Assembly: GCA_033442325.1 (NCBI GenBank)
Contig: JAWQFM010000013.1
Location: 210,069 to 274,068 of the forward strand
From: Salpingoeca rosetta
Taxonomy: Eukaryota; Protista; Choanoflagellata
DNA: 64,000 nt
Direction of reading: 5' to 3'
A model generated the notes under the pieces. The model had not been told where the DNA came from. It did no database searches and was given only the letters and a program-made list of their open reading frames with translations. Made by a program: the position numbers and the translations under genes. Shown here one piece after another: positions 49,848-51,614 of this stretch (within the stretch, counting starts at the first letter, position 1; every line of letters begins with the position of its first letter).

Positions 49848-51116
49848 CAACAACAACAACAGAACGATGGCGATGGCGATGGCGATGCGGATGATGACAG
49901 CGGTGGCCCAGCATCCATTCACGACATCGTTCGCGACATTGGCGACAGCGTGCGGTACACGATGGTGCCCAAGTTTGAGGAGTACGTGTCGACGGTGAAG
50001 CACACGGTGGAGACGCTCAAGGAGCTGGGCATCGTGGTGCTGCGCAGCCGCAACTATTGGGGCGATGGGGACCACTACCAGGGCCTGAACATGACACTGA
50101 AGCACCCGACCGCAGGCGTGATGTTTGAGCTGCAGTTCCACACGGAGCAGGGCCTGAAGATCAAGAAGGAGTGCCACAAGCTGTACAAGAAGTACCGTGT
50201 GGAGAAGTCGCCCTTCAAGAAGAAGCGCTACTTTGATGCGGGCTGCAAGCTGGCAAACAAGGTCAAAGTGCCCGAGGGCGCGCTTGAGCTGGACACGATC
50301 GTGGAGACGGCCCCGCCAGACCCCGTGGAGCTGCTGGCCGACGACCTGCGCGTGACCAGCTTGCTCCTGCGCGAGACAATTGACAGCATCCTCGGCCCGC
50401 TCATTGCCGACATGCAGCCATCGGCACAGGGCAGCAGCGGCGGCGGCAGTGGCGATGGTGGTGGAGATGGTACTGGTGAGGAGCAAACGGCAACAGAGGA
50501 GGCGGAGGAGAGCAAGGGCGAGGGACAGGGACAGGACAAGGGAAGCCAGCGAAAGCAGAAGAAGAAGAAGACAAAAGGAAAGAAGCGGGCTGGAACCGGT
50601 GGCCGTGGCGGCGCTGCTGCGCAGAGCGAAGTGGCAACCAAGCAGCGGCTGATGGCGGAGATTACCGAGCACATGGAGAATGCCAAGTCGAAGAACGTGC
50701 GCGACGGGTCCAAGGCTGTGACCGATGTGCTGCGCTACCACGTGGTGGTGCCTGCGGACGAGTACGTGCCTGCTGTCGACCGCGTGTTGAAAGGGCTGGA
50801 GGGGGAGCGGCAGGTGACGGCGCGGCCCATCCAGAACTTCTGGCAGCACGGCGACGCGTATCAGGGGCTGCATGCGCCGTTTGTGTTTGTTGACAAGCGC
50901 GCAGGCACCGTTCCGTTTGAGATTCGCTTCCACACGCCGGAGACGTGGGCGCTGCTTCGTGGGCGCATGGCCGCATTCCTGGCCTCCCTCGACGCCCTCC
51001 CCGCACACGACCGCAAGCAAAAGTACCAGGTGTGTTGTCTGTGTCGATGTGTGTGTGTGTGTGTGTGTCTGTGTGTCTGTGCGTGTGTGTGTCTGTGTGT
51101 GTGTGTGTGTGTGTCG

Positions 51117-51155
<39 letters not shown>

Positions 51156-51582
51156 GTCGATATGTGTGTGTGNNNNNNNNNNNNNNNNNNNNNNNNNNNN
51201 NNNNNNNNNNNNNNNNNNNNNNNNNNNNNNNNNNNNNNNNNNNNNNNNNNNNNNNNNNNNNNNNNNNNNNNNCTCTATGCTCGCACGTGTGTGTTCTCTT
51301 CATCCCCCCCCTAGTCGTGAGAGTCTTTTTCATTTTCGCTTCAAGGTGTTGTGTTGTGTTGTGTTAACTCTGTCTCCGCTCGCCACACATCCACACACAT
51401 CCACACACATCTCGCACACATCCACACATTCCACACACATCCGCACATATCCTCCCCTATCTCATGTTTTGTGTACAGTCATGCTTGCGGAATGGGAGAA
51501 GCTGCCTATGCCTGAGGGCGTGCTGGAACTCAAGTCGAAGAGGCTGCAGGTTGACCTGGGCGAGCTGGTCCAAGACGTTTAG
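49452..51582 (+). CDS. RelA/SpoT-homologue small alarmone synthetase (toxin-SAS/Apk-like) domain plus degenerate tandem copy; exons about 49452-51033 and 51479-51582
   Basis: Copy 1: LAGLDHRTKEYESLLRK (RxKxxxSxxxK), DIGDSVRYT, RNYWGDGDHYQGLN, FELQFHT, HKLYKKYR, KVKVPEGALEL. Copy 2: TDVLRYH, QNFWQHGDAYQGLH, FEIRFHT, KLPMPEGVLEL. Confidence 0.88.
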
Positions 51583-51614
51583 TAGTCTCGAGTGTGCTGT
51601 GTGTGTGTGTGGGT

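Follow-up and report, generated by a model that had tools for sequence, protein, structure and literature searches.

What does a degenerate copy of an alarmone synthetase do when it is fused, in a single protein, behind an intact one? The question is raised by a gene of the choanoflagellate Salpingoeca rosetta that lies on the + strand of a stretch of 64,000 nucleotides (GenBank assembly GCA_033442325.1, contig JAWQFM010000013.1, positions 210,069 to 274,068), the whole of which is called here the window and provides the nucleotide positions used below. Toxic or exported alarmone synthetases are viewed as weapons of bacteria and phages; in eukaryotes, outside plastids, we know of the hydrolase Mesh1 and of no synthetase. 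An earlier note on this DNA had taken 50301-51582 for a second, degenerate synthetase copy fused in cis, and had proposed it as a built-in antitoxin or sensor. We find here two domains of the small alarmone synthetase (SAS) type on one mRNA, the first with every catalytic motif and the second degenerate, an arrangement that is also found in other eukaryotes. Our preferred reading, which we hold to be evenly poised between right and wrong, is that domain 2 is a full SAS duplicate, non-catalytic and selected as an intramolecular pseudo-dimer partner that gates domain 1.

The C-terminal half does repeat the fold of the N-terminal one, as had been proposed. BLASTP of residues 1-286 against residues 287-526 aligns 155-236 with 415-497 (33% identity over 83 residues, E 2e-9), and a hidden Markov model (HMM) built from intact domains matches residues 412-545 at 2e-16. 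In the multiple alignment, the duplication takes in the long first helix (residues 287-321) and not the core alone. Domain 2 comprises residues 287-560 (window 50310-51029 and 51479-51579), and the SAS domain of domain 1 residues 30-286; the boundary of the copy is thus to be moved to residue 287 (50310), where domain 2 starts with a first helix of its own, and the whole SAS domain is duplicated. The span first delimited does hold a degenerate copy, but not in one open frame, as 51030-51478 is an intron with an N gap. The features of the gene are as follows.

49452-50309, + strand: domain 1 (residues 1-286), an intact SAS domain, recognised by five motifs and a phmmer match to 8VX3
50310-50414, + strand: PPDP linker and long first helix of domain 2 (residues 287-321), placed by the alignment; AlphaFold2 (AF2) predicts a helix at 5-33 with a predicted local distance difference test (pLDDT) of ~95
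50415-50624, + strand: low-complexity Gly/Glu/Lys-rich insert (residues 322-391), pLDDT <60, covered by RNA
50625-50660, + strand: pseudo-Syn1 helix SEVATKQRLMAE, at the R-x-K-x3-S-x3-K site, with all key residues replaced
50721-50741, + strand: TDVLRYH, Syn2 equivalent, with Asp425 and Arg428 kept
50835-50873, + strand: NFWQHGDAYQGLH, equivalent of the G-loop (Syn3), the best-conserved stretch of domain 2 among choanoflagellates
50916-50936, + strand: FEIRFHT, Syn4 equivalent, with the Glu (Glu490) kept and Gln changed to Arg
50961-50984, + strand: GRMAAFLA, at the place of HxxY (Syn5), with His changed to Met and Tyr to Phe
51030-51478, + strand: spliceosomal intron with (GT)n, the N gap (51173-51272) and a CA-rich tract; RNA depth is zero within
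51479-51582, + strand: exon 2, with the last 34 residues of domain 2 (motif W-x2-L-P-x-P-E-G) and the stop codon; RNA from 51480

Domain 1 has all its motifs, namely HRTKEYESLLRK, GDSVRYT, YQGLN, FELQFHT and CHKLY. The five motif pairs listed in the earlier note align as it gave them (BLASTP, multiple alignment and exon 2 match, exon 2 aligning to VKVPEGALEL of domain 1 and to the domain 2 tails of the orthologues). The key catalytic columns, taken from the HMM alignment, read:

Domain 1: Syn1 RKSRK; Syn2 DRY; Syn3 YQGN; Syn4 EQHT; Syn5 HY
Domain 2: Syn1 EARAE; Syn2 DRY; Syn3 YQGH; Syn4 ERHT; Syn5 MF

Domain 2 has lost the residues for binding the ATP phosphates, with Glu in place of two of them, and also the His/Tyr pair of Syn5; the losses had been correctly read, with E-A-R-A-E at the key positions of RxKxxxSxxxK, E-I-R for ExQ and M-A-A-F for HKLY. 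The Syn1 motif is lost in both other choanoflagellate domain 2 copies too. At the Asp, Arg and Glu positions, the copy of Salpingoeca infusionum has N, V and Q, and that of Hartaetosiga keeps Asp and Glu and has lost the Arg. Given these losses, catalysis is unlikely as a conserved role of domain 2, which, to judge by its residues, is itself unlikely to catalyse.

The fold of both halves was then compared with solved structures. With domain 1 as the query, phmmer against the PDB sequences finds 8VX3 (SaEAS, E 2.8e-15); with domain 2, it finds no relevant match. The S. infusionum orthologue, modelled with AF2, matches 8VX3 with its domain 1 at Z 20.3, and RelP, RelQ, Tas1 and CapRel at Z 11.5-13.2. 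For the S. rosetta domain 2, an AF2 model built from an alignment of 25 domain 2 sequences only has a pLDDT of 82 and a predicted template modelling score (pTM) of 0.73, with disorder just in the Gly/Glu/Lys insert; it matches 8VX3 at Z 15.8 (root-mean-square deviation 3.0 over 168 residues), RelP at 13.4, RelQ at 13.1, CapRel at 11.6 and Tas1 at 10.8. From these structure matches of both domains, two synthetase folds of the RelA/SpoT homologue (RSH) type stand in tandem, as the modelling suggested in the earlier note was meant to check. A two-domain AF2 model (pLDDT 68, pTM 0.51) was not used for the interface. Pfam scans of the whole protein and of each half returned no RelA_SpoT (PF04607) match, just low-complexity polyglutamine (polyQ) noise, and a six-frame scan of the genome behind the window (55.4 Mb, 68 contigs) returned no canonical match to it: the whole branch, domain 1 included, falls outside the Pfam RelA_SpoT model.

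The two domains carry inserts in their loops. The Gly/Glu/Lys insert of domain 2 is not in the aligned orthologues, its columns being filled in 1 sequence of alignment A1; it includes, at 50550-50594, a Lys-rich stretch, RKQKKKKTKGKKR, which resembles a nuclear localisation signal and is likewise without counterpart in these orthologues. The same holds for the polyQ and Asp/Gly tract at 49791-49900, a species-specific loop insert of domain 1.

Both domains are encoded by one mRNA. The ATG at 49452 (+) opens a frame that runs to 51029 (526 codons), and coding sequence picks up again near 51480 to end with the stop codon at 51580-51582 (+). Over 49100-51600, we mapped two stranded raw RNA-seq runs, an RNA contig set and a DNA-like contig set. 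RNA depth on the gene strand is 25-175 over 49436-51031, zero over 51032-51283, and back from 51480; as coverage is unbroken over the boundary between the domains, domain 1 and domain 2 lie on one mRNA. The earlier proposal of an active and a dead domain in one polypeptide is thus sustained, insofar as the motifs of domain 1 and their degeneration in domain 2 predict activity. A single RNA contig aligns to 49900-51030 and to 51480-51585, with one letter between both pieces. Loose read ends before 51480 read ...AAGTACCAGGC, matching the end of exon 1, and the reads beginning at 51480 carry the loose end AGCAAAAGTACCAGGC, so that the mRNA reads Lys-Tyr-Gln-Ala-Met-Leu-Ala-Glu-Trp, in frame; in RNA reads from several studies, the spliced junction is KYQ-A-MLAEWEK. 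Since the RNA joins the exons across the gap, the N gap sits in a spliced intron, outside the coding sequence.

The assembly around the junction has to be read with care. On the assembly as written, a splice from the GT at 51030 to the AG at 51478 is out of frame. At 51479, the assembly has a T where all junction-covering runs have two letters; four substitutions follow in every run, read from assembly to RNA: A>G at 51492 (silent), A>G at 51508 (Met>Val), G>A at 51542 (Arg>Lys) and G>A at 51560 (Gly>Asp). As the assembly just after the N gap departs from the RNA at five or six places, this stretch is probably of low quality, or from a different strain, and the mismatch leaves the position of the intron acceptor uncertain by one or two bases. 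No contig of the DNA-like set covers 51479-51560 at an identity of at least 95%. An alternative in-frame donor at 51034 was dropped, since the RNA puts the end of exon 1 at 51029/51030. Gene-strand reads start near 49361, the leader before 49452 has no ATG, and the gene is single copy in the genome. A kinetoplastid origin, to which GC-richness and GT/CA microsatellites might point, was discarded on account of the introns and the choanoflagellate orthologues. The S. infusionum transcript (P0001, residues 416-492) runs, after the codon equivalent to the end of exon 1, into Cys/His-rich sequence unlike any orthologue; this tail is probably a retained intron at the same position, which suggests that the intron position is common to both species.

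The search for the same architecture in other eukaryotes, which the earlier note had called for, found it in several groups. A full-length word search (8000 candidates scored, partly swamped by polyQ words) retrieved a 492-residue S. infusionum protein with the same two domains (E 4e-55) and an 844-residue marine-metagenome protein with both domains at its C-terminus; its other matches came from bacteria, each a protein whose C-terminus carries one copy in fusion with a MuF/SPP1-gp7 or WXG100-like domain. With domain 2 alone (region 395-526), the word-index search gave no match, though orthologues exist, which makes it a blank of the tool. The gene of the metagenome protein lies on a contig of 602 kb, next to HPAT, U-box and BMT5-like genes, neighbours that suggest a compact green-alga-like genome. 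A tandem profile search against 1.84 billion representatives gave 4113 matches, many over the whole tandem profile, with Hartaetosiga gracilis, Phalansterium solitarium (two paralogues), Polykrikos kofoidii and a Marine Microbial Eukaryote Transcriptome Sequencing Project (MMETSP) transcriptome as named sources; the tandem is thus found in two further choanoflagellates, an amoebozoan, a dinoflagellate and alga-like marine contigs. Almost all tandem proteins with a complete domain 1 have it intact, and domain 2 is degenerate to a varying degree: among 24 copies, the full Syn1 is kept in 1, the Asp in 17, the Arg in 5, the Glu in 7 and the His in 1. The PPDP motif is common to all three choanoflagellates.

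The trees and the substitution rates speak to how long the second copy has been kept. In a FastTree analysis of 145 domain instances, the domain 1 (D1) copies of tandem proteins form a clade, and the choanoflagellate domain 2 (D2) clade (support 96, Shimodaira-Hasegawa (SH)-like) mirrors the choanoflagellate D1 clade (support 99). With IQ-TREE (LG+C20), 19 D2 copies from named eukaryotes and environmental contigs group together (SH approximate likelihood ratio test (SH-aLRT) 95), and a single clade of all 24 D2 copies is not rejected (approximately unbiased (AU) test, p 0.66). This is in keeping with a single ancient duplication and a long retention thereafter, with a long-branch caveat. Domain 2 is the faster-evolving half (mean pairwise identity 0.20, versus 0.36 for domain 1). 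The ratio of non-synonymous to synonymous substitution rates (dN/dS) proposed earlier as a check on domain 2 could be obtained for two close alga-like homologues, where, on small counts, it is 0.20 for domain 2 and 0.12 for domain 1; it is not computable for the S. rosetta-type gene, whose nearest orthologues are 21-27% identical in domain 2 and saturated. That domain 2 is not decaying neutrally is supported by the choanoflagellate D2 clade, the confident fold and the dN/dS of ~0.2 in the alga-like homologue.

If domain 2 is kept without being an enzyme, one has to ask where it would sit. Complex prediction of residues 30-286 against residues 287-526 scored 0.77, 0.68 and 0.77 in three runs, versus 0.00-0.01 for the controls (n=3), the pass mark of the method being reached by 51 of 78 solved complexes and by 2 of 108 mismatched pairs; at least 37% of the contacts recur between runs, with a partner pLDDT of at least 67. 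The interface between the two domains that the earlier note had wished to see checked is therefore predicted (0.77 versus a best control of 0.01), and the contact is predicted to fall on catalytic residues of domain 1:

Domain 1 side: Syn1 residues H79, S86, R89 and K90; D165; G-loop residues R200-Y202, D207-Y209 and N213; Syn5 residues K238, C241, H242 and Y245; the next helix up to F261
Domain 2 side: A287-R307 (PPDP linker and acidic start of the first helix, including D297 and D298); Q398-M408 (pseudo-Syn1 helix)

The first helix of domain 2, which is homologous to that of domain 1, is thus predicted to lie with its first half on the catalytic face of domain 1.

These contacts suggest a mechanism. 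The duplicate has lost the residues that hold the pyrophosphate donor, ATP, and the Syn5 His/Tyr pair, and with them probably catalysis, and selection would have kept it as the pseudo-dimer partner of an active domain 1. The PPDP linker, the acidic half-helix and the pseudo-Syn1 helix would pack on the domain 1 cleft (Syn1, Asp165, G-loop and His242/Tyr245), and the packed domain 2 would gate the entry of ATP or of the acceptor nucleotide, holding a very fast, potentially self-poisoning pyrophosphokinase in check until a signal loosens the contact. Gating or autoinhibition appears the most likely role because the free enzyme is dangerous in bacteria; the need for control is plausible because SaEAS, the closest solved relative, is highly toxic in the bacterial cytoplasm and very fast. 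The built-in antitoxin role put forward by the earlier note, in which domain 2 inhibits or gates domain 1, is as yet only predicted, and that the contact is inhibitory and relievable is something we infer. A more elaborate version, which we regard as unlikely, makes of the tandem a eukaryotic one-protein alarmone switch: domain 2 would plug the cleft until a trigger (a viral or bacterial protein, or a nucleotide) displaces it, setting off a sudden production of (p)ppGpp or (p)ppApp, or the pyrophosphorylation of tRNA.

Several points weigh against gating by domain 2. Both domains are known from sequence and predicted models alone, and the domain 2 chain used for folding is without exon 2. The complex score expresses how confident the model itself is, its calibration comes for the most part from microbial pairs, and it may echo the solved SAS homo-oligomers; as the domains adjoin in one chain, some contact near the junction is trivial, and occlusion of the domain 1 cleft is read from contact residues, not from coordinates. 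The grouping of the D2 copies in the trees may reflect long-branch attraction, and the dN/dS of domain 2 rests on 17 substitutions in a different lineage. Moreover, in cluster P0034 and in P0030 the catalytic residues of domain 2 are almost complete, and its ancestral role may therefore have been other than inhibition. As the earlier note had remarked, neither a hydrolase nor an antitoxin gene adjoins the gene; there is, on another contig, an HD_4 (Mesh1-like) match (G000:C3:1104608-1104838, L007; 37 bits, above the Pfam cut-off), the sole one in the genome. By its sequence, such a Mesh1-like hydrolase could handle the product of domain 1 in trans, and the enzyme could therefore be contained by other means than a fused antitoxin.

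The complex prediction speaks for contact and is silent on its sign; the same interface might belong to a non-inhibitory partner, either a structural pseudo-subunit stabilising or activating domain 1, or an allosteric nucleotide sensor working via the G-loop (GDAYQGLH) and the Asp, Arg and Glu; we consider this possible, if doubtful. The solved SAS enzymes RelQ and RelP are, as is generally known, oligomers with allosteric regulation, no part of domain 2 is better kept than the G-loop in choanoflagellates, Phalansterium and P0030, and S. rosetta keeps Asp425, Arg428 and Glu490. However, the predicted contact lies on the catalytic residues of domain 1 and not on its back face, and the Asp, Arg and Glu do not occur together in the other two choanoflagellate copies, where a shared nucleotide binding would need the G-loop alone.

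Rather improbable, in our opinion, is a domain 2 that recognises a target or substrate, such as the acceptor end of a tRNA, a site on the ribosome or a partner protein, and so directs the pyrophosphokinase activity of domain 1. The toxic SAS (toxSAS) enzymes CapRel, FaRel2 and PhRel transfer pyrophosphate to tRNA, for whose selection additional surfaces are required (PMC11559606, PMC12691689), the S. rosetta domain 2 has a Lys-rich insert, and the MGxxxS/T starts of many orthologues, detailed below, suggest a membrane placement and hence partners; yet this insert is species-specific and disordered, and SaEAS, the nearest solved relative of domain 1, acts on nucleotides. Very unlikely is that domain 2 has kept an enzymatic activity, by a changed chemistry or with another donor: S. 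rosetta does keep the catalytic Asp, Arg and the Glu of ExQ, and the copies of P0034 and P0030 are nearly intact, but the four key Syn1 residues are all replaced, two of them by Glu, the Syn5 His/Tyr is lost, and with Asn, Val and Gln at Asp, Arg and Glu in the closest orthologue, catalysis can hardly be the conserved choanoflagellate role. That domain 2 is a functionless, decaying relic or an assembly artefact around the gap is close to refuted, for in spite of its faster evolution (0.20 versus 0.36 mean pairwise identity) and of the N gap and sequence errors within the span, no stop interrupts the frame, which RNA from several studies shows to be correctly joined by splicing, a confident fold is predicted from D2 sequences only, the copy is kept in three choanoflagellates and other phyla with corresponding D1 and D2 clades among the choanoflagellates, dN/dS is 0.2 in a homologue, and the gene is single copy.

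Gating of a live domain by a dead one would have precedents. In RelA, with its pseudo-hydrolase, and in the JH1/JH2 pair of JAK, a dead domain beside a live one regulates the live one; the dead domain of RelA is a hydrolase, of another fold, whereas here the putatively dead domain is a paralogue of the live synthetase. SaEAS (8VX3), the exported alarmone synthetase (EAS) of Streptomyces albidoflavus, produces (p)ppGpp and (p)ppApp at a very high rate and is highly toxic in the bacterial cytoplasm; it is a single domain with a Sec signal peptide, acts outside the cell and is inactivated by D121A (PMC12691689). It is the nearest solved relative by sequence and fold, its five motifs are the same in domain 1 and its D121 aligns to Asp165; in contrast, the S. 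rosetta gene is eukaryotic and intron-bearing, with no evident signal peptide and with a second, apparently dead copy. The bacterial relatives in the wider EAS/polymorphic-toxin SAS group differ too: they are either C-terminal domains of toxins (MuF, WXG100) or come in arrays whose copies are intact. In CapRel(SJ46), the C-terminal domain, an inhibitory pseudo-zinc-finger, covers the active site of the synthetase by folding back and keeps it inactive until a phage capsid protein acts as the trigger, the target being tRNA (PMC9712102). The two share the RSH synthetase fold (Z 11.5-11.6) and a single polypeptide with a C-terminal domain, gating being only predicted here; the parallel with CapRel drawn in the earlier note thus stands as an analogy of mechanism but not for the fold of the fused inhibitor, as domain 2 is an SAS fold itself and not a pseudo-zinc-finger. 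According to Zhang et al. 2012 (PMC3482391), some type III effectors/toxins, of the XopAD type, have two RelA/SpoT-like domains in one protein, hence two RSH-like toxin domain copies as here, but are bacterial, injected into plant hosts, and from another branch of the family. The nearest analogue is therefore CapRel by mechanism, the SaEAS/polymorphic-toxin SAS branch by descent, and RelA and the kinase-pseudokinase pairs by logic.

In the literature as partially covered (eukaryotic SAS, toxSAS, tandem or pseudo RSH), we found no description of a eukaryotic SAS tandem family. Here, an expressed, intron-bearing choanoflagellate gene pairs an intact synthetase with a conserved and apparently dead copy, and has relatives in amoebozoans, dinoflagellates and picoalga-like contigs. 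Should the dead copy gate the live one, a toxic enzyme would be tamed in a new manner, by a paralogous pseudo-enzyme in cis; duplicated, inactivated catalytic domains turned regulators would gain a further case; and, in a close relative of animals, the gene would offer a candidate open to genetic testing for how alarmones are made and controlled.

Some observations concern the ends and inserts of the family. The S. rosetta protein begins MFLCR, has no hydrophobic core evident by eye at its N-terminus, and is without the MGxxxS/T pattern with which the orthologues P0001, P0030, P0034, P0039, P0044 and P0047 start, some of them with a Cys beside the Gly; in these orthologues, this N-myristoylation/palmitoylation pattern suggests membrane anchoring. 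A subgroup of domain 2 copies (P0002, P0027, P0028, P0036, P0038, P0039, P0041, P0042, P0049, P0053 and P0057) has in common an insert, G-x-D-D-G-V-A-F-T-x-D-D, before the Syn4 strand, and the choanoflagellate copies are without it.

Multiple copies are also found in other arrangements. Giant proteins carry arrays of two to six largely intact SAS-like copies (P0025, P0031, P0059, P0071, P0076 and P0079), one subgroup of the giant multi-copy proteins having EQPT in place of EQHT; one of these proteins, WXG100-like and of 2495 residues, from Nocardia inohanensis, has three near-identical copies. Among bacterial and archaeal genomes, the P0100-group alignment retrieved just relatives at no more than 41% identity, and the P0078 contig (2.2 kb) gave no informative gene context. 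At many Streptomyces loci (L016, L019, L029, L033, L036, L037, L039, L043, L046, L051, L053, L056, L057 and others), an intact EAS-like open reading frame (ORF; SKSRK/DRY/YKGN/EQHT/HY) is preceded on the same strand by an ORF with a partly degenerate C-terminal SAS, for example RKARQ/DRY/YKGR/ERHT/QY, which is an intact-plus-degenerate pairing in separate genes.

Upstream of the S. rosetta gene, a neighbour is transcribed from the opposite strand, with an exon at ~49198-49361 (-) spliced to 48937 (35 reads); the intron in between contains a long (GT)n tract. The starts of this minus-strand transcript and of the synthetase gene lie within ~100 bases, which suggests a shared divergent promoter.

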